A DNA stretch of 64,000 nucleotides, from the sequence record OP729297.1, one strand, 5' to 3'. Each line of letters begins with the position of its first letter. Position 1 is the first letter of the stretch. The notes under the pieces were generated by a model, which ran no database searches, had not been told where the DNA came from, and saw nothing but the letters and a program-made list of their open reading frames with translations. Of this stretch, positions 12,558 through 62,996 are shown piece by piece. The position numbers and the translations under genes were made by a program.

Positions 12558-12565
12558 AAAATTAG
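12558..12565 (-). promoter_or_regulatory. class C motif CTAATTTT
   Basis: Intergenic, 39 nt before ATG. Confidence 0.6.
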
Positions 12566-12577
12566 CGTCAGAATAAG

Positions 12578-12612
12578 AAAAGGGCCATCAGATATTCTCT
12601 GAAAGCCCTTTT
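12578..12612. terminator. intrinsic terminator
   Basis: AAAAGGGC..TCAGA..TCTGA..GCCCTTTT hairpin. Confidence 0.7.
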
Positions 12613-12616
12613 ATCG

Positions 12617-12877
12617 TTAAGCAAGTAGCAACCGGAATTGAAGTGTATTGTCGCCTTCTATCTCATGCCATACAGCCTGACCAACCAGCTCTTGGCCATC
12701 AAAGAAAGAAACAACACTGGACGACTCTTGCACACTGCGGCAGTTTTTCGTTGCTGCCAGAAAATCTTCGCATTGTACGTTGGTCGCCTTCCGCTCACTA
12801 CAAGCGTTTACTTTATTATTGCACCAGTTCGAGGACCGTGCGTTGTACTTCAACCTGATAAGGCTACGACCGCACAT
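12617..12877 (-). CDS. hypothetical protein
   Basis: 86 aa; SD GGAG; CTAATTTC upstream at 12924-12931; terminator downstream. Confidence 0.6.
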   Translation of the reverse strand: MCGRSLIRLKYNARSSNWCNNKVNACSERKATNVQCEDFLAATKNCRSVQESSSVVSFFDGQELVGQAVWHEIEGDNTLQFRLLLA

Positions 12878-12951
12878 GTTATTTCTCCAATAACTCTACG
12901 TCAGCACTACTTGCCAACATATAGAAATTAGAGAGCAGGCTAAGAATATTC

Positions 12952-13719
12952 TTAAAAGCCCTTGAAGTCCCTGAGGATGTATTCTTCAAAGAATAGGCGT
13001 CGGAAGTCTTCGTGGAAGATGATACGGTGGTTCGTTTTGAACTCGCAGTCATCACACGCGAGTGACCACAGCAGGTTATGCACTTTGGATAGCAGGTAGT
13101 CCGTACGCACACAGAAGAACTCCAGGCCGATCGTAATCGTTTCGGCACGAAGCTCGTGGTATTGTTGATTGCTTTCGCACTTCATCAGTGCATCAAGGCT
13201 TACAGATGAAACCAAACCGCTGCGATATTCAATGTTGCGTCCACCCATGTGCATAAATGAAGCAGCGCCGTAGTCAAGAATAGCCTGCCACAAGTCCGGG
13301 TTTGAATACACCAAAGACAGCTCACTGTTTTTGAGGTCAGTATCACCTTCTTTCTGTTTCAGGCTGTCTATGATTTCTAGGACGCGTGTGGCAACCTTGT
13401 TCATTGTGTCGCTGCAAACATACGTTAGATCGTGCATCAACACAACGTGGGCGCCAGCGTAAGTATAGTCACGATGACTGATAGGCGGTTCGTCCACACC
13501 AAAGCAAATGAGAGTGTGTGGCAGATTGTTTGTATTCAGTAACTGCTTAACGTAGGCTTCGACTACACGTTTAGAAGTGCCGATGATCACGACAGGCTTT
13601 GACGTGCCGTAATTCAAGCCATTGTTTTCCAGTGCTCGCGCCATATGGCACAGAGAACGGACGTAAGGGTCAAACGATCCCATAGCAGGGATATACATAT
13701 GTTGTACACGAGATTTCAT
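12952..13719 (-). CDS. hypothetical protein
   Basis: Start moved to MKSRVQ after SD GGAGG. Confidence 0.75.
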   Translation of the reverse strand: MKSRVQHMYIPAMGSFDPYVRSLCHMARALENNGLNYGTSKPVVIIGTSKRVVEAYVKQLLNTNNLPHTLICFGVDEPPISHRDYTYAGAHVVLMHDLTYVCSDTMNKVATRVLEIIDSLKQKEGDTDLKNSELSLVYSNPDLWQAILDYGAASFMHMGGRNIEYRSGLVSSVSLDALMKCESNQQYHELRAETITIGLEFFCVRTDYLLSKVHNLLWSLACDDCEFKTNHRIIFHEDFRRLFFEEYILRDFKGF

Positions 13720-13765
13720 AATAGCCTCCGGGCATAACGCCCATACATGGAGTTGAGATAAAAAG

Positions 13766-14788
13766 TTATTCTGCGATAGTGCCACGAACAACACATGGTG
13801 GTACCCAGCGTGACTTTAATTCACGCTCACCCTTTAAAGGTCCGTACCAATAACTATGATGATGGCCTCTGCGTATATGCGCACGACGACCATTCGATTC
13901 ATGAGATTTCACTTCGCTTTCATAGGTACGAATTTCATTAAGCAACTCTGTACCCACATTCCACTCACGAACATCACGAACAGGAATGATTTTGTAACTG
14001 TTACCGCTACGTCTAGGTTTGAGTGATTTGATTCCTCCTTTATAGATATTGTCTACCTGTGATGCAACGAACAGCAGCACGTTAACGACAGGCTTCATGA
14101 GAGCCATGACAGCTCCAGTGATCTCAGGGCCGTTGTCAGAATTACTGTCAACACCAGTCGCGCCGTTAGCGCCTACAAGGTGCATGAACCAATCGAAACC
14201 ATCAGACAGTTCCATGTCTTTGGTAATGTCGAATATGATATAGAGCGACATTACTTGATTGCCTGTGCCATCATTATACACACCGAAGCAGGACAAGCTC
14301 AGGTGAGTTGCCTCTTGGTAGTTAACGTATGTTGCCCAGAACCCTTCAATATCAATTTCGTATTTGTTACCGGTCGCGGCATGTTTGTAGTCGAGTGTGA
14401 ACACACAATTGATCCACTGCGACCAGTGAGGTAATTGACGCAGCGTAGAGGTCGGCAGCACTTTAGGTGCATCACCCTCAATCAGATGCGGCCACAGTTC
14501 TTTCTCAATCACAAACGATGCTTTCGTAAAAGACCAAACGTAATGCGTATAGGTCGCTGACGAAATAAACATTAGCTGACGTGCTATGTCAGGATTGATC
14601 TCCGTTGGAATCATATTAGCCCAACGAACAAACTCTTCCATAGGGATTCCTAGGGAAGGGAGTTTACCGTTCTTGTTTTTCAGGTACTTAGTGAAGTGAT
14701 CGGTTATCTTTGATCGTGCTGCACCACGAGAGGCAGACTCCTGCAGGTATGCCTCATGTACTTGGACGAATGTTGCTTTTTCAGACAT
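13766..14788 (-). CDS. hypothetical phage protein with C-terminal RxHxRRGH motif
   Basis: Start moved to MSEKAT after SD GGGAG; C-terminal RRAHIRRGHHHSYWYG..WVPP. Confidence 0.8.
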   Translation of the reverse strand: MSEKATFVQVHEAYLQESASRGAARSKITDHFTKYLKNKNGKLPSLGIPMEEFVRWANMIPTEINPDIARQLMFISSATYTHYVWSFTKASFVIEKELWPHLIEGDAPKVLPTSTLRQLPHWSQWINCVFTLDYKHAATGNKYEIDIEGFWATYVNYQEATHLSLSCFGVYNDGTGNQVMSLYIIFDITKDMELSDGFDWFMHLVGANGATGVDSNSDNGPEITGAVMALMKPVVNVLLFVASQVDNIYKGGIKSLKPRRSGNSYKIIPVRDVREWNVGTELLNEIRTYESEVKSHESNGRRAHIRRGHHHSYWYGPLKGERELKSRWVPPCVVRGTIAE

Positions 14789-14802
14789 AGAAACTCCCAG
14801 AC

Positions 14803-14836
14803 AAAAAAAAAATGGGGAGGCCATCCGGCTCTCCCC
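14803..14836 (-). terminator. intrinsic terminator
   Basis: GGGGAGAGCC-GGAT-GGCCTCCCC followed by A and T10. Confidence 0.8.
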
Positions 14837-14884
14837 TGCCCAAGTCGGGCTAGACTACACACAGCATTTGTGTTCGGTTGGTGA

Positions 14885-15586: not shown

Positions 15587-15596
15587 AAATCACTCC

Positions 15597-15647: not shown

Positions 15648-15686
15648 AAGCGAGAGAATGTGGGAGGCATCCCTCCCACTATTGGT

Positions 15687-20033: not shown

Positions 20034-21071
20034 TTAGGCTAGCCCTTGAGCCTGCATATGTTTGCGCATCTGTTCAAGTTCGAACTTATCGAACTCCTCA
20101 CCAACGTCCATCGTTAGACGAGCAACGCCGAGTGGGTCTACGCGCTTAATAAGCAGCCTCAGTTTTTCGGTACGTCTTTCACTATCTACGTGATCTTCTA
20201 AGTGATGATGGTCACTCACTTTTTGATGTAGGGACGCGTCCGCACCTTCATCAGATTCATTCGCAGGAGTATCGAGACTTACCGAGAAATTCAGAGAAGT
20301 GGTATCTTCACCTGTCGCCAGTTTCTTACGTTGAGTCTGGGGAATAGTGTACGCGATGCCGTATTCATGCTCGCTACTACTACAGGTTTGTGCGTTCAAG
20401 ATCCACCACTTCGTATAACTCACAATCGCACCACGCGACGAGTCATACTTGTTGATAGCCACGATGACGTTACGCAGGAAGTTCTGGCGCACGTCTTTGC
20501 TGTCGTACAGCTTACCGCGGTTCGTATCAACGTAGAATTTTGTTTGCTTGCTGCATAGTCTATAGAAGTCAGCAACTACCGAGTGGAAGTATTCCATGAA
20601 CTGCGGTAGAAGGTCATTCAGACGGCACAACGCGATAAAGAGTTTGGAACGAGACTCTGCGCCAAACATCTTCACGTATGCGTTCAATCGTTTCGAATAC
20701 GCTTCGCGCTTGATAGGGTCTTGCGTCGAAATGAATCCGCGATAGAGATCAACATACGTCGCGTAGTATCGCTTAATTACATTTTCCAGGAAGACGTAGA
20801 TGAAGTTGCGCTCCATTTTCAGTTCCTGGATATAAATCATTTTCTGATCACGAGGCACAGAGAGCGCCTTAATCAGAAGGCTAATCGCACGGTCACGCGT
20901 TTCTGCGTTATACGGCTTTCGCTTCTTATTCGACGTAATCATGTTCAACAGATAGGTCAGTTGCACATCGAATACGTTCGTGTTCTCAACAATCTCACGG
21001 AGGCAGTCGTGAAGCATGGTGTCCATGACGCTTTCTATCTGACCGCCTGTGAGATTCGACTTATTGTTCAT
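20034..21071 (-). CDS. phage sigma-70-like factor (regions 2-3, no clear region 4)
   Basis: DVRQNFLRNVIVAINKYDSSRGAIVSYTKWWILNA (region 2.2-2.4); VSLDTP (region 3). Confidence 0.85.
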   Translation of the reverse strand: MNNKSNLTGGQIESVMDTMLHDCLREIVENTNVFDVQLTYLLNMITSNKKRKPYNAETRDRAISLLIKALSVPRDQKMIYIQELKMERNFIYVFLENVIKRYYATYVDLYRGFISTQDPIKREAYSKRLNAYVKMFGAESRSKLFIALCRLNDLLPQFMEYFHSVVADFYRLCSKQTKFYVDTNRGKLYDSKDVRQNFLRNVIVAINKYDSSRGAIVSYTKWWILNAQTCSSSEHEYGIAYTIPQTQRKKLATGEDTTSLNFSVSLDTPANESDEGADASLHQKVSDHHHLEDHVDSERRTEKLRLLIKRVDPLGVARLTMDVGEEFDKFELEQMRKHMQAQGLA

Positions 21072-21103: not shown

Positions 21104-21112
21104 TATTTACAG
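21104..21112 (-). promoter_or_regulatory. class B motif CTGTAAATA
   Basis: Upstream of the sigma gene. Confidence 0.65.
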
Positions 21113-26078: not shown

Positions 26079-27166
26079 AGCTCAAATGTTTTTACGATAT
26101 GCTTCGGACGTTGAGACTTCTGCTTCTTGTCCGGCAGCAGACCTTGTTGTTGAGTTTTCCGACCCGTACTTACGATTTCCATATATGTCAGGTCAGGGTT
26201 GGCCATGATTCGCTGCTCTAACTTCTTCATGAAGTCAATCATGTGTGATTGAATAAAGCAATAGTCAACAAAAGGGCATGTGTCATATCCGTGGAACTCG
26301 TCCCAATAATACTCAGCGCTCTTGCACGGCTTACGTTTAATAGCTGGCAGCAGATCACCCGTGCGCGCCGATTTTACCGCAGCATCCCATGCGCGTATTT
26401 GCTCCATCATAAAATCTTTTGCGCGTTTTGACTCTGCCTCGTCAAACACAAAGGTCTTCTCGACAAACTTTTTAGGGTTGTCACGCGGTACGTACACCAG
26501 AGTGTAGTCCACGATGTTGTAGCCATAACGCTTTTTGAGAAGATAGGCGTAGGTCGCGATCTGAAAGCGATGGTACTTAACAAAGAACGAACCATCTGCG
26601 GCCTTAGTGACCATAGTTGATTTCAAATCGATCAGACTGTATGTGCCGTCAAGATTATCAATCAGTCCATCGACGTAACCTTTGAGTGACTTGTACAGGA
26701 CTTTCAATTCTGCATAAGCCATAGGTTGATCGCAAGATGGGCAGCGGTTGTTCGTGCTTTTAGTTCGCGTGTACTTCCCTTTCTTGTACTTACCGTCAAC
26801 CATTTTGCCTTTGGTCTTCGGGTACTCTACGCACTTCTCGTTGGTACACTTCCAGTGACCAACCATCTGACCACTGTGGCCCAGAGCATTCTGCAACGAT
26901 TCGTGCATCCCTGTCCCTGCTTTCGCAAAGATGTTCAGCAACGTACCAGACTCACCAGTCATGCACTTGTTGTGCTTCTGGTAAATCAGCTTGGCCGTTT
27001 CTTGAATCGCACAGATAGGAAACATTGAAGGGCTGACACGTTTCTTCGGCCAGCGCTTCTCTTGGTTCTTTACGTCAAGCGCAGCATCGATCATCTTGCC
27101 GATGCGCGACAACACGCGAGTATCATTGACTCGCGCTGGTACGTTTGCGAACGTTCTCATAGTCAT
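26075..27166 (-). CDS. Cas4-like PD-(D/E)XK exonuclease
   Basis: SPSMFPIC, GTGMHE, GYVDGL..LIDLKS, QIATYAY, C-terminal Cys cluster; inserted CxxxxC..CPSC. Confidence 0.85.
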   Translation of the reverse strand: MTMRTFANVPARVNDTRVLSRIGKMIDAALDVKNQEKRWPKKRVSPSMFPICAIQETAKLIYQKHNKCMTGESGTLLNIFAKAGTGMHESLQNALGHSGQMVGHWKCTNEKCVEYPKTKGKMVDGKYKKGKYTRTKSTNNRCPSCDQPMAYAELKVLYKSLKGYVDGLIDNLDGTYSLIDLKSTMVTKAADGSFFVKYHRFQIATYAYLLKKRYGYNIVDYTLVYVPRDNPKKFVEKTFVFDEAESKRAKDFMMEQIRAWDAAVKSARTGDLLPAIKRKPCKSAEYYWDEFHGYDTCPFVDYCFIQSHMIDFMKKLEQRIMANPDLTYMEIVSTGRKTQQQGLLPDKKQKSQRPKHIVKTFEL

Positions 27167-27458
27167 CCTCGCTTACGGCAATTGTTTGTTCAAAGAAAAC
27201 GAACTTGTAGTAGCGAGTACCAAACAGGTAACAGCGTACTTCAACACCTTCTTCCTTGAAAGAATACATCAGGCGCAGACTACTGGTCATTGTCTCAATA
27301 TCAGTAGCGGCAGGCAAAGTAAGGCCTATCATATCACCCTGATTGTTGAACGCACCTAACGTTTGAGGTTCGACTTTGAGTAGATCGCAAAACTGTAGCC
27401 AGTGCCGATCATAAAAGCGACGTTCCGCTTTATGTACATAGCGATGTGGATTACCCAT
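27123..27458 (-). CDS. hypothetical protein
   Basis: 111 aa ORF. Confidence 0.7.
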   Translation of the reverse strand: MGNPHRYVHKAERRFYDRHWLQFCDLLKVEPQTLGAFNNQGDMIGLTLPAATDIETMTSSLRLMYSFKEEGVEVRCYLFGTRYYKFVFFEQTIAVSEDDYENVRKRTSASQ

Positions 27459-27474
27459 TCTTATTGTCCCTTTT

Positions 27475-27483
27475 CTGTAAATA
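27475..27483 (+). promoter_or_regulatory. class B motif CTGTAAATA
   Basis: Upstream of primase. Confidence 0.65.
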
Positions 27484-27522
27484 TAGCTATATGCGTAAAT
27501 TACGAAACGAATAGAGGATGGT

Positions 27523-33015: not shown

Positions 33016-33023
33016 CTAATTTC
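33016..33023 (+). promoter_or_regulatory. class C motif CTAATTTC
   Basis: In the divergent intergenic region, 22 nt before ATG. Confidence 0.6.
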
Positions 33024-33045: not shown

Positions 33046-34155
33046 ATGAGCTGGATTGAGCGCGGGAAACCCCGCAACACATACGACCGGCACAAGACCT
33101 ACGAAACGGAACGCGTACAACGCCGATTGGACAGTGTGCAAAAGGTTGTGCAGTCCAAAGTCGAACAGGCATTGCAGGTAGACGCCACCGATATCGTCAT
33201 CTTCAAGAAAGCGAAGATGGGCCTCACCTGTAGCTGCAACAAAACCGAAAACGATGTACTGGATAACATTGCTGGTGGCCTGAAAAGTTTAGGCCGTGAA
33301 TCCGATGCAATGTCTGCTGGCGTTAAGATCGATACTGTCTCCAAGGGTATGTTCGGCGGTGGGCGCCAAGCAGTAAGCCTTGATGATATCGACGACGGCA
33401 TGAACGCTGTTATGGACGCCGCAGACCTGATGGGCATTGACACAGGTGAGGAGTTCGACGTCAAGTGGGATGGTGGTAACGTTGCGAACTGCGGCATCTG
33501 CTATCGTCAAGGTGTTGTGCCTGGTTTTGTCAGTACAGGCTTCATCTACAACATCGCCACGCACTATCACGTCAAGGAACTGGAGGGTTATACACTCGAT
33601 CAGTCCACCAGCCCAGCGACATTCAGGCAGGTACGTAAAGACGGTTACGCGGATTTCGATCAGCTTATCCCAAAATACTTTACGCAGGCGACTTATTCGG
33701 TGCGTCTGAATGAAACCATGTTACCTGCTTTCCCACGCCCTATGCTGTTGGTTAACGGTGTTGAAGTCGAACTGACAGCAGCTAATCTGGAACGCTGGCG
33801 TGGTAAACATGTGACGATTCGTGTTCGAGGAGTTGAGGCATTCTCACACGTCACGATGATCTTCGATTTGGGTGTGCCGCCTGTTAAAGGCAACATCAGC
33901 GAAGAAGCAAACGTGCTGAACTACGATCAGGAACTGACTGTCGGTAACATCACGGTAGTTCTGCCTGCGCGTAGCGGTGCGATTGAACCAGAAGATATTC
34001 TCGTTCTGCCTTTCAAAAACTACGTGCTGAAAGTTATGGAAGCACCGAAGAAACGCACAGCGAAGAACGATCAGTGGGAATGGGTGTGTACCACTCGTCC
34101 CGTACAGCGCAAAGAGATTGCGTATAACATTTTCAAAGGCTTCAAAATCCGATAG
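33046..34155 (+). CDS. putative virion neck/head-closure-like protein
   Basis: CSC..CGICY..G..PGF Zn motif recalled from jumbo-phage neck proteins; CDS secure, function inferred. Confidence 0.6.
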   Translation: MSWIERGKPRNTYDRHKTYETERVQRRLDSVQKVVQSKVEQALQVDATDIVIFKKAKMGLTCSCNKTENDVLDNIAGGLKSLGRESDAMSAGVKIDTVSKGMFGGGRQAVSLDDIDDGMNAVMDAADLMGIDTGEEFDVKWDGGNVANCGICYRQGVVPGFVSTGFIYNIATHYHVKELEGYTLDQSTSPATFRQVRKDGYADFDQLIPKYFTQATYSVRLNETMLPAFPRPMLLVNGVEVELTAANLERWRGKHVTIRVRGVEAFSHVTMIFDLGVPPVKGNISEEANVLNYDQELTVGNITVVLPARSGAIEPEDILVLPFKNYVLKVMEAPKKRTAKNDQWEWVCTTRPVQRKEIAYNIFKGFKIR

Positions 34156-40651: not shown

Positions 40652-40659
40652 CTAATTTG
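40652..40659 (+). promoter_or_regulatory. class C motif CTAATTTG
   Basis: No ORF follows; structured sequence follows instead. Confidence 0.55.
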
Positions 40660-40664
40660 TAACA

Positions 40665-40753
40665 GTACAAAACAGCGCATACGGAGTGTGTGCTGACTGT
40701 TTAGTTCGGCCTGTTTCTTTTGCCGAATTTGGGGATAGGCCGAACTCTTTTTT
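40665..40753 (+). ncRNA. candidate small RNA (two hairpins plus U-tail)
   Basis: CAGCGCATAC/GTGTGTGCTG stem; 14-bp stem 40704-40717/40732-40745 followed by TCTTTTTT. Confidence 0.5.
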
Positions 40754-40756
40754 GTA

Positions 40757-41003
40757 CAGACTCGGCCCAGAGTCACCCTAGGCCAAATAGCGTAACACCG
40801 CGTTATCGCTAATGGCCGAAAGCGGCTGCTCTAGGCTGCGAACGCTGCTACCTGCCGATAAGTTCGCAAGCCGCAAAGGGCGTAAGACCGCAAGCGCTAC
40901 CGTGTCGGTGCATTCGAAAGACACGGGGAGAAAGCCCTGGCTAGACCGTCATCTGGCGAGGGTGGACTCCAATAGGTTTTTCACGGAGAGCCTATTGGAG
41001 TTT
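40757..41003 (+). ncRNA. candidate structured ncRNA of unknown family
   Basis: At least six nested helices, GNRA-type loops, 16-bp terminal hairpin whose G-U pairs form only on the + strand. Confidence 0.65.
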
Positions 41004-41046
41004 AAGACTTTTCTGACTTTATTCTTGTGTGACTACTCGCAGTAAA

Positions 41047-41055
41047 CTGTAAACA
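41047..41055 (+). promoter_or_regulatory. class B motif CTGTAAACA
   Basis: Upstream of the 65-aa gene. Confidence 0.6.
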
Positions 41056-41095: not shown

Positions 41096-41293
41096 ATGCT
41101 TCGTAGACCAAGCTACCGTGTTGTCGCCGACTTGATTCAGGCTGACGGTACATTCACCACTCACACTGTTGAGAGTGGCATAAAAGATTATGACGTTGTG
41201 GAAAAGAAACTTGAGTCCATCAAGCAGAACCCGCCGTCCCACTTTAAGCAATTCTTCCGCGTGGTGCCACGCTGGGAAATGAGCTTTGCCTAA
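41096..41293 (+). CDS. small hypothetical protein
   Basis: 65 aa, SD AGGAG. Confidence 0.75.
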   Translation: MLRRPSYRVVADLIQADGTFTTHTVESGIKDYDVVEKKLESIKQNPPSHFKQFFRVVPRWEMSFA

Positions 41294-41389: not shown

Positions 41390-41398
41390 CTGTAAATA
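41390..41398 (+). promoter_or_regulatory. class B motif CTGTAAATA
   Basis: Upstream of the clamp loader. Confidence 0.65.
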
Positions 41399-41435: not shown

Positions 41436-42722
41436 ATGGCGAAAGAAGAAAAGAAAAAGAAGAAGTCGCGTTCGTTCGGTGACGATAAGCCATCGAAAAA
41501 GAAAGGCGGTTCTTCCGAGTCTGTAGAGTTGACCACGATTAACTTTGCAGACCAATTCCGACCGAAGAAGATTGAAGACTATGTTGGTCAAGACCACATC
41601 GTTAAGATCATGAAAGGTTGGCAGAAGTCGAAAACGATTCCATCAACGATGATCATTACTGGCCATCTTGGTTCTGGTAAAACAACGTTTGCTCGTCTGG
41701 TGGCGAAGTACATCAACTGTGAATCGTTCTCGGCCTGTGGCAAATGTCGTTCGTGTGAAATGCACGACCGCGGCGCACACCCTGACGAGCAAGAGTTCGA
41801 TATGGGCGGTGAAGCTGGTAAAGTTGACGGCAGCCAGAAGATTGTGGACAGCGCACCATTGAGTCCGATGTTCAAACGTCGTGTGTTCATCTTCGACGAA
41901 TCGCATCTCATGTCCAGCGCAGCCGAATCGAAGTTCCTTAAGATCACCGAGCAGCCACCAGCGCACGTTGTATTCATCTTCGTAACAACGAACCCAGAGA
42001 AGATGAAGAACACGATGATCAGCCGCATGACGCAACTGCCTATCAGGCCGATTCCTACTGACGTGATTCATAAGCGTCTGTTGGAGATCAGTGACCAGCT
42101 TGATATCATGCCGAAGAAAGATAAGGCGCGTGATAAAGCAGACGCAGCATTGCATCAGGTTGCTGAATATGCTGGTGGCCAGATGCGTGGTGCAATCACC
42201 ATGTTGCAGAACATCTACGCTTCGGTGAAAGGTGGTGAGGACTTCGATAAGAACCTCGTTGCCGAACTCGCAGCAGCAGATCCAGAGATCGATATGGAAG
42301 CGAAAGCTGTCCAGATGATCGGTGCGTATCTTGCGATGGACCTGATTGGTGTTATTCAGTTCCTGCGTGAAGCGAACAACCCTCGTGCAATCGTAGCGAA
42401 AGCTCGTTGGATTATTCACGGTGTGTTGGGGCATTATGCCGAAACGAATAAGTGGCAGTCGGCTGGCCTCAAGATGTTCATGAACATGGTCAAGAAAGAC
42501 AACATCAAAGTCAATCTGGTCAGTTTGGTGTATCTGCAATCCGCATTAGCAGAAGCCGAAGTAGCATTCAACTCTACATCGGTGCCAGCAGATATCATGC
42601 TGGAAACTGTGACCACCAGAACCATGTCTGATATCTATAGCGGCAAGCTGGTGGTTGATTTGGGTAACGACGACGAAGACGACGAACCCAAAGAGAAGAA
42701 GAAAAAGAAAAAGAAGAAGTAA
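41436..42722 (+). CDS. dnaX: DNA polymerase III gamma/tau-like clamp-loader subunit
   Basis: FRP..EDYVGQ, GHLGSGKTT, INC..CGKCRSC, DESH, LKITEQPP, AGGQMRGA. Confidence 0.92.
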   Translation: MAKEEKKKKKSRSFGDDKPSKKKGGSSESVELTTINFADQFRPKKIEDYVGQDHIVKIMKGWQKSKTIPSTMIITGHLGSGKTTFARLVAKYINCESFSACGKCRSCEMHDRGAHPDEQEFDMGGEAGKVDGSQKIVDSAPLSPMFKRRVFIFDESHLMSSAAESKFLKITEQPPAHVVFIFVTTNPEKMKNTMISRMTQLPIRPIPTDVIHKRLLEISDQLDIMPKKDKARDKADAALHQVAEYAGGQMRGAITMLQNIYASVKGGEDFDKNLVAELAAADPEIDMEAKAVQMIGAYLAMDLIGVIQFLREANNPRAIVAKARWIIHGVLGHYAETNKWQSAGLKMFMNMVKKDNIKVNLVSLVYLQSALAEAEVAFNSTSVPADIMLETVTTRTMSDIYSGKLVVDLGNDDEDDEPKEKKKKKKKK

Positions 42723-42785: not shown

Positions 42786-42793
42786 CTAATTTT
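42786..42793 (+). promoter_or_regulatory. class C motif CTAATTTT
   Basis: Upstream of an MEIFVSLS gene. Confidence 0.6.
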
Positions 42794-42827: not shown

Positions 42828-43364
42828 ATGGAAATCTTTGTATCACTCTCGAAGATTACACTTGGGTCTGAGGGCATGGCACAAATTGATAGCCCATGCA
42901 CGACCCCTGACCTGAAGAAGCTCGCATCGCTTATCTTTGGTCTGGCCCGCTTCGATCAAGACACCTTTGGTTCAATCACTACTCGCAAGGGCACACTGTC
43001 TGCCGTGCGTGAAGGCGAAGAAGGTGCTCTCTGGTTGTTAGGCGATAAGCGTCTTAAAGATGCTACTGACTTTGCCCAAATCATGAAGCCGATGCCTATG
43101 TTAGGTCCTAACGGCGTCGGTGATCTGTACATGACGCTCAACGTACCGCAGCGTCCTGCTCAATTCTTGATCTGCCCTAAAGGTGGTCACTCCATTATGT
43201 GGTTCGGTACTGAGAAAGCTCTTATCGACCACTACGCAGAGCGCGATGCCAAGCCATCTGTTAAGATGATGCTGACAGGCAACCGCGGTAATGCGTCCGT
43301 GATTCGTTCGTGGTCTGCCGCTGATATCGAAGACGAGGAAATTCTCGACCTTCAATCAGCATGA
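42828..43364 (+). CDS. protein with MEIFVSLS tag
   Basis: 178 aa. Confidence 0.85.
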   Translation: MEIFVSLSKITLGSEGMAQIDSPCTTPDLKKLASLIFGLARFDQDTFGSITTRKGTLSAVREGEEGALWLLGDKRLKDATDFAQIMKPMPMLGPNGVGDLYMTLNVPQRPAQFLICPKGGHSIMWFGTEKALIDHYAERDAKPSVKMMLTGNRGNASVIRSWSAADIEDEEILDLQSA

Positions 43365-48411: not shown

Positions 48412-48728
48412 TGTTGGTGTCAATACTCGCGGCGTTCGTTATGCGTCCTGTTGTGTTAGGCATTAACATGGCTGAGATGAAACGCACTGTGTACATCATG
48501 GCCGTTGCACTATTCCTGATAGTGTTCTGCAACGAAGCTATGGAGATGACTAAGTGGCATGTGTTCACCTACGTCATGTCCTTCATGATAATCGCGGCCA
48601 TGTATGATGGTGCGTATGCTGGTGGCCTGAAACACTATGTCAAAGGTTATGTATTGCAGTTCGGTTATCTGGCACACATCGGCATTATCTCAGGCTTAAT
48701 CGCTTGGGCAACACGTTGGACATTCTAA
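48387..48728 (+). CDS. membrane protein (3-4 TM helices)
   Basis: 113 aa, mostly hydrophobic. Confidence 0.75.
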   Translation: MSADYQALMLVSILAAFVMRPVVLGINMAEMKRTVYIMAVALFLIVFCNEAMEMTKWHVFTYVMSFMIIAAMYDGAYAGGLKHYVKGYVLQFGYLAHIGIISGLIAWATRWTF

Positions 48729-48746
48729 GGGGCTTCGGCCCCTTTT
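48727..48746 (+). terminator. intrinsic terminator
   Basis: AAGGGGC-TTCG-GCCCCTT followed by TT. Confidence 0.8.
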
Positions 48747-48759: not shown

Positions 48760-48767
48760 CTAATTTT
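48760..48767 (+). promoter_or_regulatory. class C motif CTAATTTT
   Basis: Upstream of paralog A. Confidence 0.6.
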
Positions 48768-48814: not shown

Positions 48815-49660
48815 ATGCAGTACATATCATCTTTTTTCGGGTTGGGTGGTCCATCACCCACGAACCCGAACGTATTCCTATACGACAGCCGAGAAGACTC
48901 TGACTTCTCCACGCTGACGGATATGACCAAGGCAAACGTCCTTGCTCGAAAAGCCCGTGCTGTTTTAGGCTTCAATGGATATCTCAATCCAATCAGAGGG
49001 CGTAAGTCCAATAAATATCACTTCACCTGCTTGAAGTACCAGCAGCCAAGTTCAATCGCGCTTGATAACTCCTACGACATTGTTCAACAGGACCCTTCAA
49101 AAGGTCTTAGTGGTAACTGTAGTATTGCGGCCTCGCAGTCCTATTCGTTTCTGAACACATCAGGCAACACGACAGTATTTCTGACCACAGGGATGATTGC
49201 TGGTCAGCCTATACAGATGCCTCCGATGAATCTGCATGATGGTAACTGTCCGTACGGTCAATTTGCCACAGGATTCATTGTCAGTCGATATGTCAGAGAC
49301 ACAGGCGTAACTGCAACTGGTACATGTAGCGCTGGTGGTGCAACGGGTGTTTGTACGTATACAACTGTCACGGCGAACGAAACTCCTGCATACGCGTGTA
49401 CGATGATGGGACTGCCTACATCTTTCTATGCTACTGGTGCTAACGGTACACCAGGTGTTTCTGCGGGTGCGTCATATACAGGCGTCTTCGCTCAGAATCA
49501 GACAGGTGAAGATGAAGCGCCTATCCTGAATAAAGCATTCTTCTATAGCTCTGTCCTACGTGCATTCTGCAAGCTCGATACGAATGACTTTGATGCTGTC
49601 ACGTCAGATCCCGGCACTCGTCCTAAGATGCGGTTCAAACAATCGAACTTAGCCATCTAA
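48815..49660 (+). CDS. putative virion protein, paralog family member A
   Basis: MQYISSF..LNPIRG..KYHFT..PGTRPK. Confidence 0.8.
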   Translation: MQYISSFFGLGGPSPTNPNVFLYDSREDSDFSTLTDMTKANVLARKARAVLGFNGYLNPIRGRKSNKYHFTCLKYQQPSSIALDNSYDIVQQDPSKGLSGNCSIAASQSYSFLNTSGNTTVFLTTGMIAGQPIQMPPMNLHDGNCPYGQFATGFIVSRYVRDTGVTATGTCSAGGATGVCTYTTVTANETPAYACTMMGLPTSFYATGANGTPGVSAGASYTGVFAQNQTGEDEAPILNKAFFYSSVLRAFCKLDTNDFDAVTSDPGTRPKMRFKQSNLAI

Positions 49661-49696
49661 CGATAATTTTAACCTGTCTAAAAGAGGGCTATATCT

Positions 49697-50269
49697 ATGG
49701 ACGCTATGACGTTTCGAAAGAAAGCAATCGCGGAAGTTATTGATCGTGAAGGTGGCGAGAAATACACTAACCGCTCTGCTGACCGTGGCGGTCCTACACG
49801 TTGGGGTGTCACGGAAAAGAATGCTCGCGCTTATGGTTACAAAGGCGCTATGCAAGACCTGCCATATGAGATTGCGTATGCGATCTACAGTGCTAACTTC
49901 TGGGACTTCTGCAAATGCGATCAGCTTGCGAAGTACAGTCAGGAACTGGCGCTGTGGGTATTTGACTACGCAGTTAACTCAGGACCACCAGCCGCAATTG
50001 CGGAGTTACAGGACCAGTTGAATATTCTGAACAGCAGAGGCAAGCTCTATCCAGACTTTGCACCTGCTGCGAATATTGGTCCTAAGACTATCGCTGCGCT
50101 GGACGCGTATTGCAAAGTGCGCGATATCAAAGTATTGGCTTATGCCTACAACGGCTGCCGTATTGCGAAGTTGAAAAACATCGCTAAGGCAGATGAAACC
50201 CAGGAAGATAACATTTATGGTTGGTACCAGCGTGTTATCACAATCACTAAACAAGTTGGAGTAAACTAA
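49697..50269 (+). CDS. endolysin, glycoside hydrolase family 108 plus PG-binding domain
   Basis: REGGEKYTNRSADRGGPTRWGVT; FDYAVNSG; DGxIGPxT-like ANIGPKT; YGWYQR. Confidence 0.9.
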   Translation: MDAMTFRKKAIAEVIDREGGEKYTNRSADRGGPTRWGVTEKNARAYGYKGAMQDLPYEIAYAIYSANFWDFCKCDQLAKYSQELALWVFDYAVNSGPPAAIAELQDQLNILNSRGKLYPDFAPAANIGPKTIAALDAYCKVRDIKVLAYAYNGCRIAKLKNIAKADETQEDNIYGWYQRVITITKQVGVN

Positions 50270-56583: not shown

Positions 56584-56591
56584 CTAATTTT
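56584..56591 (+). promoter_or_regulatory. class C motif CTAATTTT
   Basis: Upstream of the histone-like gene. Confidence 0.6.
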
Positions 56592-56658: not shown

Positions 56659-57321
56659 ATGGCCGTAAAACGCAAACTGAAAAGCACCAAAGATCCTAAG
56701 ATGACCAAAAAAGCTGGCGCTGCCAAGGCTACTAAGCCTAAGGCGAAAAAAGCTAAAGCTGCACCTGCGGCTAAAGCTCCAAAGGCTACCAAAGCTGCTA
56801 AGCCAAAAGCTGCCAAAGCGAAAAAGCCGGCGCGTACCGCTTCTGAGAAAAAGTTCGACAACGAACGTGCTACTCACCTGCGTAAGCAGGCTAAGAAAGC
56901 AAAAGGTAAAAGCATCGAGCAACGCCTGAAAGAGCGTCTGGCTAAATACCAGGCTGGCCTGAAAGCGACTGCCGTTTCTCAGGGCAAAGTTCGTAAGCTG
57001 CTGCTGAAACGTCAGACCATCGCTCTGGGTAACCTGAAAGCGAAACAGAAAGCTGGTTATCGTAACCTGATCGCCAAGCAGAAAGCTCGTCTGGCCGCGC
57101 GCAAAGCTCGCAAGCCGATGATCAAAGACGGCAAGCTGGTCACTCCGAAAGTAGCTCCGAAAGCGGTTACCCTGGTTAAGCCTAAGCTGAAACCACTGCC
57201 GCGCCTGAAAAAAGGTAAAGAGACTACCCAGAAAGCTGTGAAGCACACTGGTACCGCAGCGCAGAAAGCTGGCGCTAAGAAAGCGGCAAAGACCAAAGCA
57301 AAAGGTAAAGTAACTGTTTAA
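56659..57321 (+). CDS. histone H1-like Lys/Ala/Pro-rich DNA-binding protein
   Basis: KAAKPKAAKAKKP-type repeats; SD GAGG. Confidence 0.8.
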   Translation: MAVKRKLKSTKDPKMTKKAGAAKATKPKAKKAKAAPAAKAPKATKAAKPKAAKAKKPARTASEKKFDNERATHLRKQAKKAKGKSIEQRLKERLAKYQAGLKATAVSQGKVRKLLLKRQTIALGNLKAKQKAGYRNLIAKQKARLAARKARKPMIKDGKLVTPKVAPKAVTLVKPKLKPLPRLKKGKETTQKAVKHTGTAAQKAGAKKAAKTKAKGKVTV

Positions 57322-57351
57322 TCGGCCTGGTCGATAGACATTACTACAAAC

Positions 57352-57381
57352 AAAAAGGGGTGGCTTCGGCTGCCCCTTTTT
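57352..57381. terminator. intrinsic terminator
   Basis: GGGGTGGCTTCGGCTGCCCC followed by TTTTT. Confidence 0.85.
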
Positions 57382-57393
57382 GTATTTCTGTCA

Positions 57394-57401
57394 CTAATTT
57401 T
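57394..57401 (+). promoter_or_regulatory. class C motif CTAATTTT
   Basis: Upstream of the MEIQVSLS gene. Confidence 0.6.
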
Positions 57402-57430
57402 TCTTCAATATCCGAACACTGGGGAAAATC

Positions 57431-59338
57431 ATGGAAATACAGGTTAGCTTGTCTGCCCTGGCTCCTTCACAATATCGACCGTACTTGAAGAACTGGACGC
57501 CAAACAAAGCGCTCTTAAAAATCTTCGAGCGCATAAGCGGTAAGACCGGCCGCAAGGCAATGCGCATTTATTTCGATATCGGCCATAACGTCATTAAGAA
57601 CGCCGATGTGTTGTCCACTGCACCGCAGCCTATCAACGATTTTCTTGCCGAAAAGAAAATCACTGTACTGGATTATTTTGCAGGTATCGGTCGTGATTCT
57701 CACGGGCGTACTGTGCGTTTAGGTAAAGCTCTTGCCAAAGAAGCCGAACTCAAGAAGATGTTCGACTCTGACCCTAATCGTAAAGTTGTAGCGCAAGAAG
57801 GTAAGAGTGGTCGCATGGTGTGTCTGTCAATGCACCCATACGATATTGCAGGCATGTCTACTGACCGTGGTTGGGTGAGCTGTATGAACCTGGTCAACGG
57901 CACGAACAAACACTACATCAAATCAGAAGTGAAGACAGGCACTTTAATAGCATATCTTATTGACGCTAACGACAAGAATATCAACAAGCCTGTTGCTCGC
58001 TGCCTGTTGAAACCTTTCTTTGACGTCGATGCTGTTAGGCCGAGTGTTGGCAAGAAAGGCGTTACTGTCGTATATCTTGCAGACCGTGCGTACCCAGATA
58101 AGAACGCCACGTTTGTAATGCAGGTTCAGGACTGGGTTGACCAGAATATCAATAAAGACCTTGCTGCCGGTAAAACTACGTTAAGTCTCGCGCTGCCTGA
58201 CAAGTTGTATGACGATATGCAGCGTGGCATGTTTAAGTATGATGCATCTAAGACTGCCGCTGAAAACAACGAGGCGTCCTACGCAGAACTGCGTATGCGT
58301 CAAGAAGTGCGTAATGATCCTGATGGCTATTTGTCGAAGATTACTGCTACGGAATATACGGACCGACTCGGCAACAATATCGCTAACATGTCGAAAGAGT
58401 TCTTCTCGTTTGTGCGTAAAGTCCTCGCTTCTGGTTGGGGCGGCGATGACCTGCTGTCTAAGGTCACCAAAGCAGTTGCACATATGGAGGCTTTTGAAAG
58501 CCCTAGTGTGTACTCTCAGATCAAGAAAGCCTATCTCGACTACGCCTCTAACAATCTGTCAGATAGTCAGTTGCTGGAGCAGGCCGAGCTGGTGGGCTTC
58601 AACCCAGGCCTAGCTATACCTCTTCTTGGTTTTGTCGAGAGTGAGGATGAGAGCATGACTGACCGCGTTACTCAATCCCTTGATACGATTGCCCTGTATT
58701 CTAAAAAGGATGGAAGTGAGGGTGGATATCCTGACGCACTGCGTGAGATTTGGGATAAGGCAAAATATTTTTCAGATTCTGATGGTGTGTTCTGGCGACA
58801 GGCTTCGTATGTAGGTTTCAATGGCGGTACCGTAGAGTCGGTACTTGAGGACATGAATAGCCGCTACAGCAAAGAAAATCTTGTGGCCGCGCTTGTGTCT
58901 CTGTACTTCGCTGTTCGAGACAAAGATAAAATTGAAGCATTGACAGCCAAATCGTTAAAGGCCTGTGATGATGTTGTTCGCCCTGATTACACTGAATATG
59001 CACTGCCTATATTTGACGGCCTGACTCCTATTAAGATTCATCTAGGCATGCGCCTGACAAACAGAATAGTGGCTGATACTCATGGCTTCGACAAGAAGAC
59101 ATTCAGAAAAGTGAATGCTAACAGATTCCAAATGGAGAAAGGCATCACTGCCTCGGATGTAATTAACTCCAACGTTATTGCTGATGTAGGCTTGACGTTT
59201 GTGGACAAGATCGCTGACTCGTCTGGTTTCGTTGCGTTTTACGTCAAAGACCAGCTTGACGCAGAGGCATATTCCGCGGCAATTAATGCTATTGAGAAAG
59301 CTATTGTTCTCAACTATCTCGATCACGCAACCAATTAA
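57431..59338 (+). CDS. large protein with MEIQVSLS tag
   Basis: 635 aa; HPYDIAGMSTDRGWVSCM motif. Confidence 0.85.
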   Translation: MEIQVSLSALAPSQYRPYLKNWTPNKALLKIFERISGKTGRKAMRIYFDIGHNVIKNADVLSTAPQPINDFLAEKKITVLDYFAGIGRDSHGRTVRLGKALAKEAELKKMFDSDPNRKVVAQEGKSGRMVCLSMHPYDIAGMSTDRGWVSCMNLVNGTNKHYIKSEVKTGTLIAYLIDANDKNINKPVARCLLKPFFDVDAVRPSVGKKGVTVVYLADRAYPDKNATFVMQVQDWVDQNINKDLAAGKTTLSLALPDKLYDDMQRGMFKYDASKTAAENNEASYAELRMRQEVRNDPDGYLSKITATEYTDRLGNNIANMSKEFFSFVRKVLASGWGGDDLLSKVTKAVAHMEAFESPSVYSQIKKAYLDYASNNLSDSQLLEQAELVGFNPGLAIPLLGFVESEDESMTDRVTQSLDTIALYSKKDGSEGGYPDALREIWDKAKYFSDSDGVFWRQASYVGFNGGTVESVLEDMNSRYSKENLVAALVSLYFAVRDKDKIEALTAKSLKACDDVVRPDYTEYALPIFDGLTPIKIHLGMRLTNRIVADTHGFDKKTFRKVNANRFQMEKGITASDVINSNVIADVGLTFVDKIADSSGFVAFYVKDQLDAEAYSAAINAIEKAIVLNYLDHATN

Positions 59339-59377
59339 ATGTAAAGCAATCATGTAGGGTAAAACAGGCCTTAGTCG

Positions 59378-59385
59378 CTAATTTT
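59378..59385 (+). promoter_or_regulatory. class C motif CTAATTTT
   Basis: Heads the 59.4-63 kb operon. Confidence 0.6.
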
Positions 59386-59422
59386 TACTCGATATGATTA
59401 CTAGACCCAGTAGAGGATGATC

Positions 59423-60706
59423 ATGGCTAAGACTGCCAAAAACAATGAAGTTAGCAGTATCAGCGCATCTGTTGACTATAGCTCTGGGAATATGACTGCA
59501 TTACGTGGTGCGCGTACAGCGAAAGAGTTCCGTAACGTACTCGATAAAGTTATCGCTAACGCCACCTCAGTAGTCATCCCACAGAAACTCCTGTCCGTCA
59601 GCGCTAAAGCCATCGAACTGTCTGATATCGAAGGCTCAATCAAAGGCAAACAGGCCAAGGCTATCGACCTTAACCAAGTTATCGATCTGACCAAGATTGA
59701 TATCTCTGATGTTAAGAGCAAAGCTCAATACAACCAACAGGTAAGCCAACTGTCTCAGGCGATTGGTGAACTGTCGGTCGCGTACCAGATTCTGAACAGT
59801 AAGACTTTCAGCGCATTCAAAGATCAGAACGCAGCCGCTAAGTCTCTGCTGAACGTTATCACTCAGGCGAAAGACCAGCAGCAAAAACTGGTTAAGCTCA
59901 TGAGCATCGACGTTAAAAACGGCGCGCCTAAAGAGCATACCAAGCTGGCTGCAACCATCGCCAACTACCTGTCGAAGATTCTGAATAAAGAAGACTATTC
60001 GAAGATTCGTACTCGTACTTTCATCGCGTCTGGTACTGACCCAATCTGTTTCCAGACCTACGTGTTCATTGATAACTTCGTGAACTCCGATGGCATGCAC
60101 TACCCGAACTATGCTCTGGTACTGTCTACCACAATCGCAGTAGCAAGCGGTATCAGCGAAAACTTCCTGACGTCACTCGTTGACGAGAAAGTTCCTGGCT
60201 CGTTCCCTATGGGACGTCAGATCGCTACCGCTCCTGAGATGAAGCGTACTATCAACCATCTGATGGCTCTCGACGGATTCTTGAACTACAGCGAGCGTAA
60301 GCCTATCAACCGTTCTACGCAGAACCTGCGTGACACCACCATGCTGGGTAATCAGCAACACACCATTCGTGGTCGTAAGAAAGAAATCTTCGACAACGTT
60401 CGTGTGCAGAACGATAGCCTGTATGTGCGTCTGGTTCCTGGTCTTAGCCCGACCGAGAAGAAAGAAGCTGTCACAGAGATTCTGGGCATGGCGTCTACTG
60501 CGCTTCGTGCTGGCCGCGGTGGTAAGAACAGCATCGTTCACCAGATGGTCAATGGCCGTAACGGCCGTGAGTTCGTTAAGATCTCTCTGACTGGTTCTGG
60601 CGGTACTGCGAAAGGCGTTCTGACCCTGCGTAAGATTGATGAAATCGCCGACGTTATGGGTCTGAACCCACAACAGAAACGTCTGCTGAAACAATCGGTC
60701 AAGTAA
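59423..60706 (+). CDS. putative virion/head protein
   Basis: 427 aa; SISA and SVSA sites near the N-terminus; highly-expressed-style codons. Confidence 0.75.
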   Translation: MAKTAKNNEVSSISASVDYSSGNMTALRGARTAKEFRNVLDKVIANATSVVIPQKLLSVSAKAIELSDIEGSIKGKQAKAIDLNQVIDLTKIDISDVKSKAQYNQQVSQLSQAIGELSVAYQILNSKTFSAFKDQNAAAKSLLNVITQAKDQQQKLVKLMSIDVKNGAPKEHTKLAATIANYLSKILNKEDYSKIRTRTFIASGTDPICFQTYVFIDNFVNSDGMHYPNYALVLSTTIAVASGISENFLTSLVDEKVPGSFPMGRQIATAPEMKRTINHLMALDGFLNYSERKPINRSTQNLRDTTMLGNQQHTIRGRKKEIFDNVRVQNDSLYVRLVPGLSPTEKKEAVTEILGMASTALRAGRGGKNSIVHQMVNGRNGREFVKISLTGSGGTAKGVLTLRKIDEIADVMGLNPQQKRLLKQSVK

Positions 60707-61812
60707 TGGCGTTAACGCATTTCAAGGTAGATCGCACGTTCAAGGAGAATACGTATAGCGGGCAGTATCGTCCGCAACAAATGCGTAGCGCAACTCCTTA
60801 CGTGCTTGATACTATCATTCGTCAAGTCCTCGCCTATTTGATTGAAGCTCAGATGCCTTTCACCAAGTCGCTGAACTTCACTCTGGTGAACGTGTACTCG
60901 ACGGATAACGATATGTCGATGGGTTACTCGAATCGTCCTGATGATTCAGTGATCATGATTGACAGCGGTATCTGCTTCACGTTCTGCCTGAAACCTCGCG
61001 CTAACCGTATTCTCCCGCAGCCGATGACTCAACTTGGCCGCGGGCGTTACTGGCGCTTGTGGGGCGTTGACAATAACAACGAATACATCACTATTGGTCT
61101 TCCACGTTCGGTCATCTTTGGTCTGAACGGCAATGGTGTTGAGATGCTGAATGTGGTGTACAACACTATCGGTGCTGTCACGCGCAACTACGTCCAGCTG
61201 GTATCGAGTTCGAACCTTGCTCCTTCGCAGAGCGCTCGCGATCTTGCATCGCAGGCGAACCAAGTGAAAGACCTGACTGTATCGAACCTGATGCGCACAG
61301 TGCCTTACGATGAATGGCACTTCAATATCAACATCTGGAAAGACTACTCGGAGATGCTTATCCCCGACGTGATGCGTAAAGACTTTCCGCTTTACTTCTG
61401 TATTTTCATCCTGCCTGGCTTGTATCTGCCTAACGTAGGTAAAGCTGGTACGGAGTTCATCGAGAAGACTGTGGTTGACTTTGTTGCGAAAGGCCTGATG
61501 AAGATTGCTGCTTCTCTGGCTTCGCCGATTGTTGATCAGAGTCCTGAGTTGCTTGCTGCACTCTATCTCCTTCTGACTCCTACGCAGGACACGAGCGATA
61601 TGGAAGCGAGTAACGTGGAACGAACGAACTTCGTGCGTAGCTACTTCTACAACCTGAGCCAGAACATGCAAAACGTTCCTGAGTATCAGGCTAAGGTAGT
61701 GCGTACTGCGAACTCCAACCACGTTGCAATGGCGAGAGCGCTAATCGAAGGTGGGTATAATGACCAGCTACGCAATTTGATTGAGTACCTGGGACTCACT
61801 AAGGCAGACTGA
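60706..61812 (+). CDS. putative virion protein
   Basis: 368 aa, TAATG-coupled. Confidence 0.75.
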   Translation: MALTHFKVDRTFKENTYSGQYRPQQMRSATPYVLDTIIRQVLAYLIEAQMPFTKSLNFTLVNVYSTDNDMSMGYSNRPDDSVIMIDSGICFTFCLKPRANRILPQPMTQLGRGRYWRLWGVDNNNEYITIGLPRSVIFGLNGNGVEMLNVVYNTIGAVTRNYVQLVSSSNLAPSQSARDLASQANQVKDLTVSNLMRTVPYDEWHFNINIWKDYSEMLIPDVMRKDFPLYFCIFILPGLYLPNVGKAGTEFIEKTVVDFVAKGLMKIAASLASPIVDQSPELLAALYLLLTPTQDTSDMEASNVERTNFVRSYFYNLSQNMQNVPEYQAKVVRTANSNHVAMARALIEGGYNDQLRNLIEYLGLTKAD

Positions 61813-61813
61813 T

Positions 61814-62977
61814 ATGCGCACAACAGAAGGTAACGTACTGGTCCTCGAGGAAAGTTTCTTCGACGATCTAGACCAGCCTGTTTATCCACAGTCAGATGAT
61901 ATGGGGCCTGTAGTAAGCCTCATTGACCCTGACGATAAATCGGTGCTGGCTCAAGTGGTCGCAACGCCGGGAGAAGTGCCTGGCTACTGGACTGCTGATG
62001 TTGCGATTCCTAACATGGGGCTGGTGGACGATAAACGTCTGACAGTCAAATGGCGCTATGATTCCGAAGAAGGGATCATGCAGTCGAGTCAGGAACTCAT
62101 TGTTGAGCCACTGACTGAGAACCGTGTTACGGATATCGTTACGCTTTTTGGTGATAACGAAACGTTTGAGATGACGTTGCCGTTTCACTTCGATACGCGT
62201 GGCGATAAGCTGAAATTCCAGCTCGCGTTAAACAACCAAATCGTTGCATCTGATATCGACTCCGGCGATGCAGGTGTGAAGATGATTGTGAACCGCGCCA
62301 AGACCTGCGTGTTTCAGGTGCCTGTGTGGGTTGCTACTCGTCGCTTAGAGCCGATTAGTTTAATCGCGCAGTACACTTCTGCCTCACGCAAGACAACCAA
62401 GATGCTGACGTATAAGCTGTGGGCAGTAACGCCGCAGATTCTTATTGCAGCGTCGATGGTAGAAGACCACATCAACAAAGCGCGTCAGTACAACGTTATT
62501 CCTGAACTGGAATATACGCAAGCTGACCTGATTGGTTATCTGTATCGTGGTCTGGCGTTGTTCAACATGATTGGCCCGCGTGTTACTGGTTTCAACGGTA
62601 CGAACATGCAAGGCACAATCCTTGACGGCTGGATTACCTGTAGTTGTTACTATGCGCTCGCTGCTCAGTTACAGGCAGAAGGGCAAATGGCTTTCGACTT
62701 CACAGGGCAGGTCGTTAACTTAAACATGGACCGCACACCTTCGATTGAGGCTGCTCTCGGTAGACTCGAAACGCAGATTCAAGGTCCTGTTACGAACTTG
62801 AAGAACAAACTGTCTAAGGCCGGAATCAACGACGGTGATGGTTCTCAGGGTTCTGGTGCGATTGACGGTGCTCGCGCACTTGGCAAGCTCGGCATCACAA
62901 ACAGCCCAACCACCAAATGGGCTACTGTTGGTAACCGCAGTATCTGGGTCAATGCGCGATATCGCGTAACAGGCTAA
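61814..62977 (+). CDS. putative virion protein (possible head-tail adaptor)
   Basis: Start moved to MRTTEG; helical C-terminal region; function is a guess from context. Confidence 0.65.
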   Translation: MRTTEGNVLVLEESFFDDLDQPVYPQSDDMGPVVSLIDPDDKSVLAQVVATPGEVPGYWTADVAIPNMGLVDDKRLTVKWRYDSEEGIMQSSQELIVEPLTENRVTDIVTLFGDNETFEMTLPFHFDTRGDKLKFQLALNNQIVASDIDSGDAGVKMIVNRAKTCVFQVPVWVATRRLEPISLIAQYTSASRKTTKMLTYKLWAVTPQILIAASMVEDHINKARQYNVIPELEYTQADLIGYLYRGLALFNMIGPRVTGFNGTNMQGTILDGWITCSCYYALAAQLQAEGQMAFDFTGQVVNLNMDRTPSIEAALGRLETQIQGPVTNLKNKLSKAGINDGDGSQGSGAIDGARALGKLGITNSPTTKWATVGNRSIWVNARYRVTG

Positions 62978-62988
62978 CCCTAAGTTTA

Positions 62989-62996
62989 CTAATTTC
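62989..62996 (+). promoter_or_regulatory. class C motif CTAATTTC
   Basis: Upstream of the 63024 gene. Confidence 0.6.

Follow-up and report, generated by a model that had tools for sequence, protein, structure and literature searches.

Does the short word CTAATTT, which recurs in front of genes in a 64-kb stretch of sequence record OP729297.1, mark a class of promoters, and, if so, which genes does it serve and which protein would read it? The stretch of 64,000 nucleotides, hereafter the window, is a 100% match to the Erwinia jumbo phage vB_Ea_2910A (OP729297.1, record positions 186001-250000; 262,854 bp, genus Alexandravirus), and positions given below are those of the window unless the record is named. 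This phage belongs to the "Lupandier" group of jumbo phages (Lu11, PaBG, AD1, Alexandra, Y3, and Yoloswag), which are described as being without their own RNA polymerase (RNAP) but with sigma factors (PMC7412058, PMC7824862). Our analysis suggests, with a probability of about three in four, that the hexamer TAATTT is the -10-type core of a single-box late promoter class that is specific to this phage group and is used by the host RNAP together with a phage specificity factor.

Position and geometry of the TAATTT box

Gene positions were those of the 334 coding sequences (CDS) deposited with OP729297.1, for all of which a start and a stop codon were confirmed; nearly all carry the product name "hypothetical protein." Searching both strands of the window returned exactly 10 copies of CTAATTT. 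These are the ten listed in an initial annotation of this DNA, except that the minus-strand pair starts at 12559 and 12925 rather than at 12558 and 12924. The number of copies is not enriched by itself (7.6 ± 3.0 in shuffled windows), and the initial annotation rightly held that the evidence is positional. Intergenic DNA amounts to 7.3% of the window (6.0% of the genome), and every one of the 10 copies falls within it, in the orientation of the next gene of the deposited CDS table, with no intragenic copy. When all oriented 7-mers were ranked without bias for upstream enrichment, CTAATTT came first (10/10, binomial P of 3.9e-15, or about 6e-11 after correction for 16,384 words).

Nine of the 10 copies are located 23 to 68 nt from a start codon. 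On the minus strand, the box at 12559-12565 stands 40 nt before gene 10878-12518 (546 aa, no assigned function), just after a terminator-like hairpin, and the box at 12925-12931 stands 47 nt before gene 12617-12877 (86 aa). On the plus strand, the box at 33016-33022 opens the plus-strand arm, with gene 33046-34155 starting 23 nt further on, and is followed by boxes at 42786-42792 (35 nt before gene 42828-43364), 48760-48766 (48 nt before gene 48815-49660), 56584-56590 (68 nt before gene 56659-57321), 57394-57400 (30 nt before gene 57431-59338), 59378-59384 (38 nt before 59423-62977, an operon with the head-tail connector gene among its members), and 62989-62995 (28 nt before gene 63024-63824). 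The remaining copy, at 40652-40658 (+), is 437 nt from the next annotated gene and fronts a conserved structured non-coding stretch with no open reading frame (ORF). A terminator scan, used in place of a separate detector that was discarded as too strict (2/29 sites), identified strong intrinsic terminators ending shortly before two of these boxes, at 48727-48744 (16 nt before the 48760 box) and 57350-57383 (11 nt before the 57394 box). Since the 33016 box heads its arm beside a divergent gene and cannot be reached by co-directional transcripts, a promoter is required there.

Variants of the 7-mer were also considered. Of the two proposed in the initial annotation, ATAATTT at 49663-49669 (+), 27 nt before the endolysin gene (49697-50269), fits the extended consensus described below and is CTAATTT in the relatives SNUABM_1, SNUABM_2, and Y3, but CTAATTG at 9052(-) was rejected, as its start codon is only 12 nt away and the word is not enriched. 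A further member that had been overlooked is GTAATTT at 27497-27503 (-), 38 nt before gene 27123-27458 (111 aa).

Genome-wide, CTAATTT occurs 20 times, always on the locally transcribed strand and in 17 cases just before a start codon. The first position of the 7-mer is degenerate (C, then A, G, and T), leaving TAATTT as the core, and no other 6-mer in the genome shows stronger upstream enrichment (29 of its 47 copies before starts, P of 3e-34). Chance or the AT-richness of intergenic DNA could be ruled out as an explanation, because hexamers made of A and T only, when pooled, are found upstream in 12.7% of cases versus 62% for TAATTT. The extended form is usually t-C-G-(C/A)-TAATTT, in which the t-C-G-C prefix at -4 to -1 is weak. 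No conserved -35-type element was detected within 45 nt upstream of TAATTT at the 29 upstream sites. Downstream, a G is located exactly 7 nt after the hexamer in 16/29 sites, GT[C/A/T] peaks sharply at this offset, and positions +7/+8 are conserved at 0.96/0.92 across relatives. In sigma70-family promoters, the first, second, and sixth bases of the -10 element (T1, A2, and T6) matter most. TAATTT keeps all three of them (T-12/A-11/T-7 of a sigma70-type -10 box), with A2 and T6 present in gene-oriented hexamers at the 29 upstream sites, and the favored G is where a canonical +1 would fall. We infer that these boxes act as promoters, in which case the first transcribed base would be the G located about 7 nt beyond the hexamer.

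Target genes, conservation, and strand-specific purging

The genes served by TAATTT (class C) were compared with those following a second box of the same genome, CTGTAAATA (class B), which is likewise a single box, with the consensus aAAT-CTGTAAA-tA. TAATTT precedes both tail-sheath genes, the ATPase/virion-protein/major-head block, the PAAR/baseplate block, the endolysin gene, and the head-tail connector operon. The CTGTAAATA box precedes the genes for ligase, Dam methylase, single-stranded DNA-binding protein (SSB), a sigma factor, primase, clamp loader, recombination endonuclease, and HNH endonuclease. Among targets of known function, 6 virion or lysis genes versus 3 others follow TAATTT, compared to 0 versus 8 for CTGTAAATA (Fisher P of 0.009). 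As previously claimed in the initial annotation, the two sets are distinct, with 28 upstream regions genome-wide containing TAATTT only and 21 containing CTGTAAA only; a single long upstream region contains both, and there the boxes serve different transcription units. At 27459-27522, the GTAATTT variant and the class-B box of the primase gene (27475-27481, +) form putative back-to-back divergent promoters, 15 nt apart. The description of class C targets as virion or late genes held where function is known (sheath, head, baseplate, endolysin, and connector), but most targets in the window have no assignable function and one is a non-coding RNA. The initial annotation also named histone-like genes among the targets. 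The 86-aa protein of 12617-12877 has no histone-like look; the Lys-rich N terminus encoded by 56659-57321 may underlie that remark.

The box is conserved well beyond the genus. In five other genera or lineages, orthologous sites retain both the hexamer and the predicted start, whereas the flanking bases have drifted. At the window sites, hexamer identity across AD1, SNUABM_1, SNUABM_2, and Y3 is ~0.96, the shortfall being due to one locus that stops short of the site, compared to 0.66 at -10 to -5 and 0.70 at +1 to +6 for the flanks. Motif position 1 alternates between C and A among relatives at 42786 (ATAATTT in SNUABM_1) and at 49663. The 33016 box is kept in AD1, SNUABM_1, SNUABM_2, Y3, and Lu11, and the 59378 box is conserved as far as Lu11, a very distant Pseudomonas phage, in which TAATTT precedes the orthologues of 33046 and 59423. 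In Y3, CTAATTT is found before the orthologues of 33046, 42828, 56659, 59423, and 63024, and also before an endolysin-type hydrolase gene and the non-coding stretch. De novo analysis of the structural arms of Yoloswag and JA11, which belong to other genera (sheath identity of 71-78%), returned TAATTT as the top upstream 6-mer, before genes for a 620-650-aa protein, the ATPase, the sheath, and PAAR/baseplate proteins, as well as the major head gene in Yoloswag.

Conservation also extends to the non-coding stretch behind the 40652 box, a candidate RNA of ~345 nt (40665-41010, +). Its conservation begins at the predicted +1 of the box (GTACAAAAC, conserved in 5 phages), and a consensus fold of the five sequences (RNAalifold) comprises 108 predicted pairs, 23 of which show a compensatory change. 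The stretch contains an internal hairpin followed by a T-run at about 40703-40760, and no Rfam family matched in the window, this RNA included. Two class-B boxes follow it, at 41047-41053 (+) before a 65-aa ORF (41096-41293) and at 41390-41396 (+) before the clamp-loader gene (41436-42722), so that a late unit and two middle units share one 800-nt stretch.

TAATTT is found on the transcribed strand in 46 of its 47 genome copies, and its reverse complement, AAATTA, occurs once in the coding sense strands of all CDS versus 57 ± 7 in synonymous-codon shuffles (z of -8.4). This observed/expected ratio of 0.02 is among the lowest of the 4,096 hexamers and similar to that of avoided restriction-site words; unlike the latter, the depletion of AAATTA is confined to one strand. 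Sense TAATTT inside genes is barely depleted (17 observed vs 24 expected). Such antisense-only depletion fits selection against harmful antisense promoters and does not fit a signal acting at the RNA level. As for class B, the reverse complement of its core, TTTACAG, is absent from coding sense strands (0 vs 9.6 expected), and sense CTGTAAA is over-represented inside genes (31 vs 15), where it frequently falls within the final codons of the gene upstream. Taken with position, orientation, promoter-like geometry, and cross-genus conservation, the antisense purging supports a second phage-specific promoter class, as had been proposed in the initial annotation from the letters of the sequence.

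Candidate sigma factors and competing explanations

The only sigma factor detectable at the sequence level is encoded within the window at 20034-21071 (-). This 345-aa protein matches phrog_17569 and, weakly, Sigma70_r2, while Sigma70_r4 and r4_2 gave no match in the genome. Its family comprises at least 233 relatives, many of them on 200-310-kb contigs, and the family profile aligns to region 2 of SigA, with the Y-x-x-W-W motif kept. Among distant members of the lineage, phages of Xanthomonas and P. putida have a sigma factor that is 23-25% identical. In an AlphaFold model (pLDDT of 79), residues 3-233 superpose on residues 111-446 of sigma70 (Z of 15.8, 3.3 Å, 223 aligned), corresponding to a sigma1.2-NCR-sigma2 arrangement, and the C-terminal part is modeled as a disordered linker and three helices with no match to sigma3 or sigma4. 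Without recognizable sigma3 or sigma4, such a protein should recognize nothing beyond a -10-type box. The gene follows a class-B box (21106-21112), with CTGTAAATA located 32 nt upstream of the start codon, and the same is true of every relative examined.

The initial annotation had placed a second sigma factor outside the window and, by implication, made it the reader of class C. A search of the genome did reveal a candidate for such a factor, and a possible reader of TAATTT, in a 379-aa protein encoded at record 140596-141735 (-) and homologous to the product of PaBG gene 112 (phmmer E of 2e-28). The protein has no sequence-level similarity to sigma factors, and an hhalign comparison of the two sigma-like families was not significant. 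In its model (pLDDT of 82), residues 146-237 fit sigma2 of the extracytoplasmic function (ECF) factor sigmaH (Z of 10.2, 2.0 Å, 78 aligned), residues 143-379 span whole ECF sigma factors, and 50/50 top structural matches are sigma factors. The C-terminal 240 residues are thus ECF-like in fold, and the some 140 additional residues in front of them make up a helical N-terminal domain. On the basis of this model, a second phage sigma factor is possible. For PaBG gene 112, HHpred gave 97% to sigmaE according to its authors (PMC7412058).

Three promoter tiers appear to be visible in the genome sequence: host-type, CTGTAAATA, and TAATTT. The host-type early promoters consist of an extended -10 element, TGnTATAAT, with a conserved CTGGACAAAA box about 33 nt upstream, and number about 10 copies at record 144-197 kb, all before small ORFs; those in the window are at 5929-5973 and 10764-10772 (both -). 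The ECF-like gene is two genes downstream of a host-type promoter. In the cascade that we propose, host sigma70 promoters would lead to class B, which serves the replication genes and the sigma gene, and then to class C, from which the host RNAP with a phage-encoded specificity factor would transcribe virion, lysis, and associated genes and one structured RNA late in infection. The factor would most likely be the RpoD-like sigma of 20034-21071 (-), itself switched on from a class-B promoter. We infer this identity at roughly even odds and from circumstantial evidence: the gene stands behind a class-B box and the protein carries sigma70-type residues for reading a -10 element, which makes it at least as likely a reader of TAATTT as the ECF-like protein. 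The preferred ordering would then run from host sigma70 to the ECF-like factor, from there to the CTGTAAATA genes, including that of the RpoD-like sigma, and finally to the TAATTT genes. Extended to the whole lineage, from phages of Erwinia, Dickeya, and Yersinia to the Pseudomonas phages Lu11 and PaBG, this becomes a tentative and somewhat doubtful proposal, that of a cascade of three tiers in which two unrelated phage sigma factors direct the host polymerase. An early ECF-like factor would read CTGTAAATA before replication genes and the second sigma gene, the RpoD-like factor would read TAATTT before virion and lysis genes and the ~345-nt RNA, and TAATTT alone would be potent enough to account for antisense purging.

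Several observations weigh against a late promoter class read in this way. Most TAATTT targets in the window have no known function (PHROGs families of "unknown function" only, nothing in Pfam), so that the terms late and virion rest on the structural arm and on the annotation of relatives; the Y3 record holds no virion mass-spectrometry labels in the late arm. Some targets are not virion genes, such as a tRNA-methyltransferase-like gene and a 71-aa gene of a PHROG family labeled DNA ligase, and some structural genes, for instance, the major head gene of vB_Ea_2910A, have no box of their own. A search for sequencing runs of the phage and its relatives yielded DNA runs and, apart from these, just contigs from wastewater metagenomes or metatranscriptomes, which do not reveal where transcripts start. 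In addition, the evidence for the sigma factor is circumstantial, and the genome encodes another sigma-like protein.

The same promoter class could indeed be read by the ECF-like protein, leaving CTGTAAATA to the RpoD-like sigma, as in the version of the initial annotation. The homology to PaBG gene 112, the structural fit to ECF factors, and the HHpred result for PaBG all speak for this exchange of roles, which we nevertheless regard as unlikely. The RpoD-like sigma would need to activate its own gene, which immediately follows a CTGTAAATA box, and the A-11/T-7 signature of TAATTT is of the kind read by RpoD-type sigma1.2/sigma2, which the sigma encoded in the window retains. The location of the ECF-like gene near a host-type early promoter suits an early-made factor reading the middle class, the ECF call lacks sequence-level support, and for helical proteins a Z of around 10 does not settle the matter.

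Explanations in which TAATTT is not the promoter core fare worse. If TAATTT were an operator, bound by a phage activator or repressor, or a site for a nucleoid protein, and lay beside promoters with their -10 elements elsewhere, this would agree with the small number of conserved bases (6-8) and with the chance-level sigma70-like matches found nearby by scanning. However, conservation within -45 to +30 is otherwise limited to the base at the canonical +1 distance, the late arm has no excess of sigma70-type promoter matches over shuffles (23 vs 22.7), and strict orientation with a purged reverse orientation is unusual for operators, making this quite improbable. A role within polycistronic late transcripts, either as an RNA processing site or as a 5′-untranslated-region element, would account for sense-oriented boxes 23-68 nt before start codons. 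Yet an RNA cleavage signal should show the opposite of the pattern observed, in which sense intragenic copies are tolerated and antisense copies purged. Several boxes also lie just downstream of strong terminators, the 33016 box heads a divergent arm with no possible upstream transcript, and the 40652 box precedes a non-coding RNA, so that an RNA-level role is hardly credible.

Relation to known phage systems

Phage late promoters used by the host RNAP are a well-known kind of system, and the putative class C promoters share several features with them. Like T4 late promoters (TATAAATA), which gp55 reads with the help of gp33 and the gp45 clamp, they would consist of a single -10-type box with no -35 element before virion and lysis genes, and, as with gp55, the host RNAP would rely on a phage factor that is essentially a sigma2 module encoded among replication genes, the reader being putative here. 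The consensus differs from that of T4: it is TAATTT, and the T4-late-like TGTAAATA, one base away from TATAAATA, precedes replication genes in vB_Ea_2910A. The sigma factor also differs, being a 345-aa RpoD-like sigma1.2-NCR-sigma2 protein. No match to the T4 gp55 families (phrog_234 and phrog_12791) or to the gp33 family (phrog_254) was found in the whole record at E ≤ 10, very divergent homologues being possible. Successive promoter classes served by phage sigma70-family factors on the host core enzyme are also known from SPO1 (gp28 and gp33/34), phiEco32 (gp36), and phage 7-11 (PMC8948821). Unlike these phages, which have their own -35/-10 or extended -10 promoters, vB_Ea_2910A has two single-box classes and two unrelated sigma-like candidates.

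Short single-box late promoters also occur in the jumbo phages phiKZ and AR9, where they are read by non-virion RNAPs. Unlike vB_Ea_2910A, those phages encode multisubunit RNAPs: a search of its genome for the beta/beta' catalytic domains (PF00562 and PF00623) gave no match, with positive controls in 14/14 genomes, a negative that covers beta/beta', as the search for T7-like PF00940 had no working control. The phage group has been classed as RNAP-less with sigma factors (PMC7824862). Within the lineage itself, the Lu11 record JQ768459 carries "putative middle/late promoter" features that are likewise phage-specific intergenic boxes; unlike the boxes described here, the five annotated in the homologous region are all of the CTGTAAATA class, and the TAATTT sites are unannotated. 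No description of the TAATTT consensus, its lineage-wide conservation, or the antisense purging was found in the literature searched.

If it acts as proposed, the box offers a usable definition of late promoters for a widespread and experimentally unstudied lineage of jumbo phages that includes biocontrol candidates against fire blight and soft rot. In genomes with >90% "hypothetical" genes, it would permit late units to be annotated and would single out uncharacterized proteins that probably belong to the virion or the late set, and it draws attention to a predicted promoter-driven, conserved non-coding RNA. It also sets up a biochemical question, namely, how the two single-box promoter classes are divided between two very divergent sigma-like proteins. 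That the reverse-complement hexamer has been almost entirely lost from one strand would be an example of genome-wide selection against stray promoters.

At 57322-59422, a whole late transcription unit seems to have been inserted recently into the late arm. Gene 57431-59338 (635 aa, no family) is absent from AD1, SNUABM_1, and SNUABM_2 and has its own terminator and CTAATTT box; its absence from these relatives indicates that it arrived with its own copy of the box. Finally, the coding strands of vB_Ea_2910A strongly avoid several restriction-type words relative to synonymous shuffles, including AAGCTT (1 vs 75), GAATTC (4 vs 88), CTGAAG/CTTCAG, CAGCTG, CTGCAG, TCGCGA, and GCGTGC/GCACGC, and GACATC (2 vs 88 expected) and AAAAAA (32 vs 224 expected) are likewise depleted.

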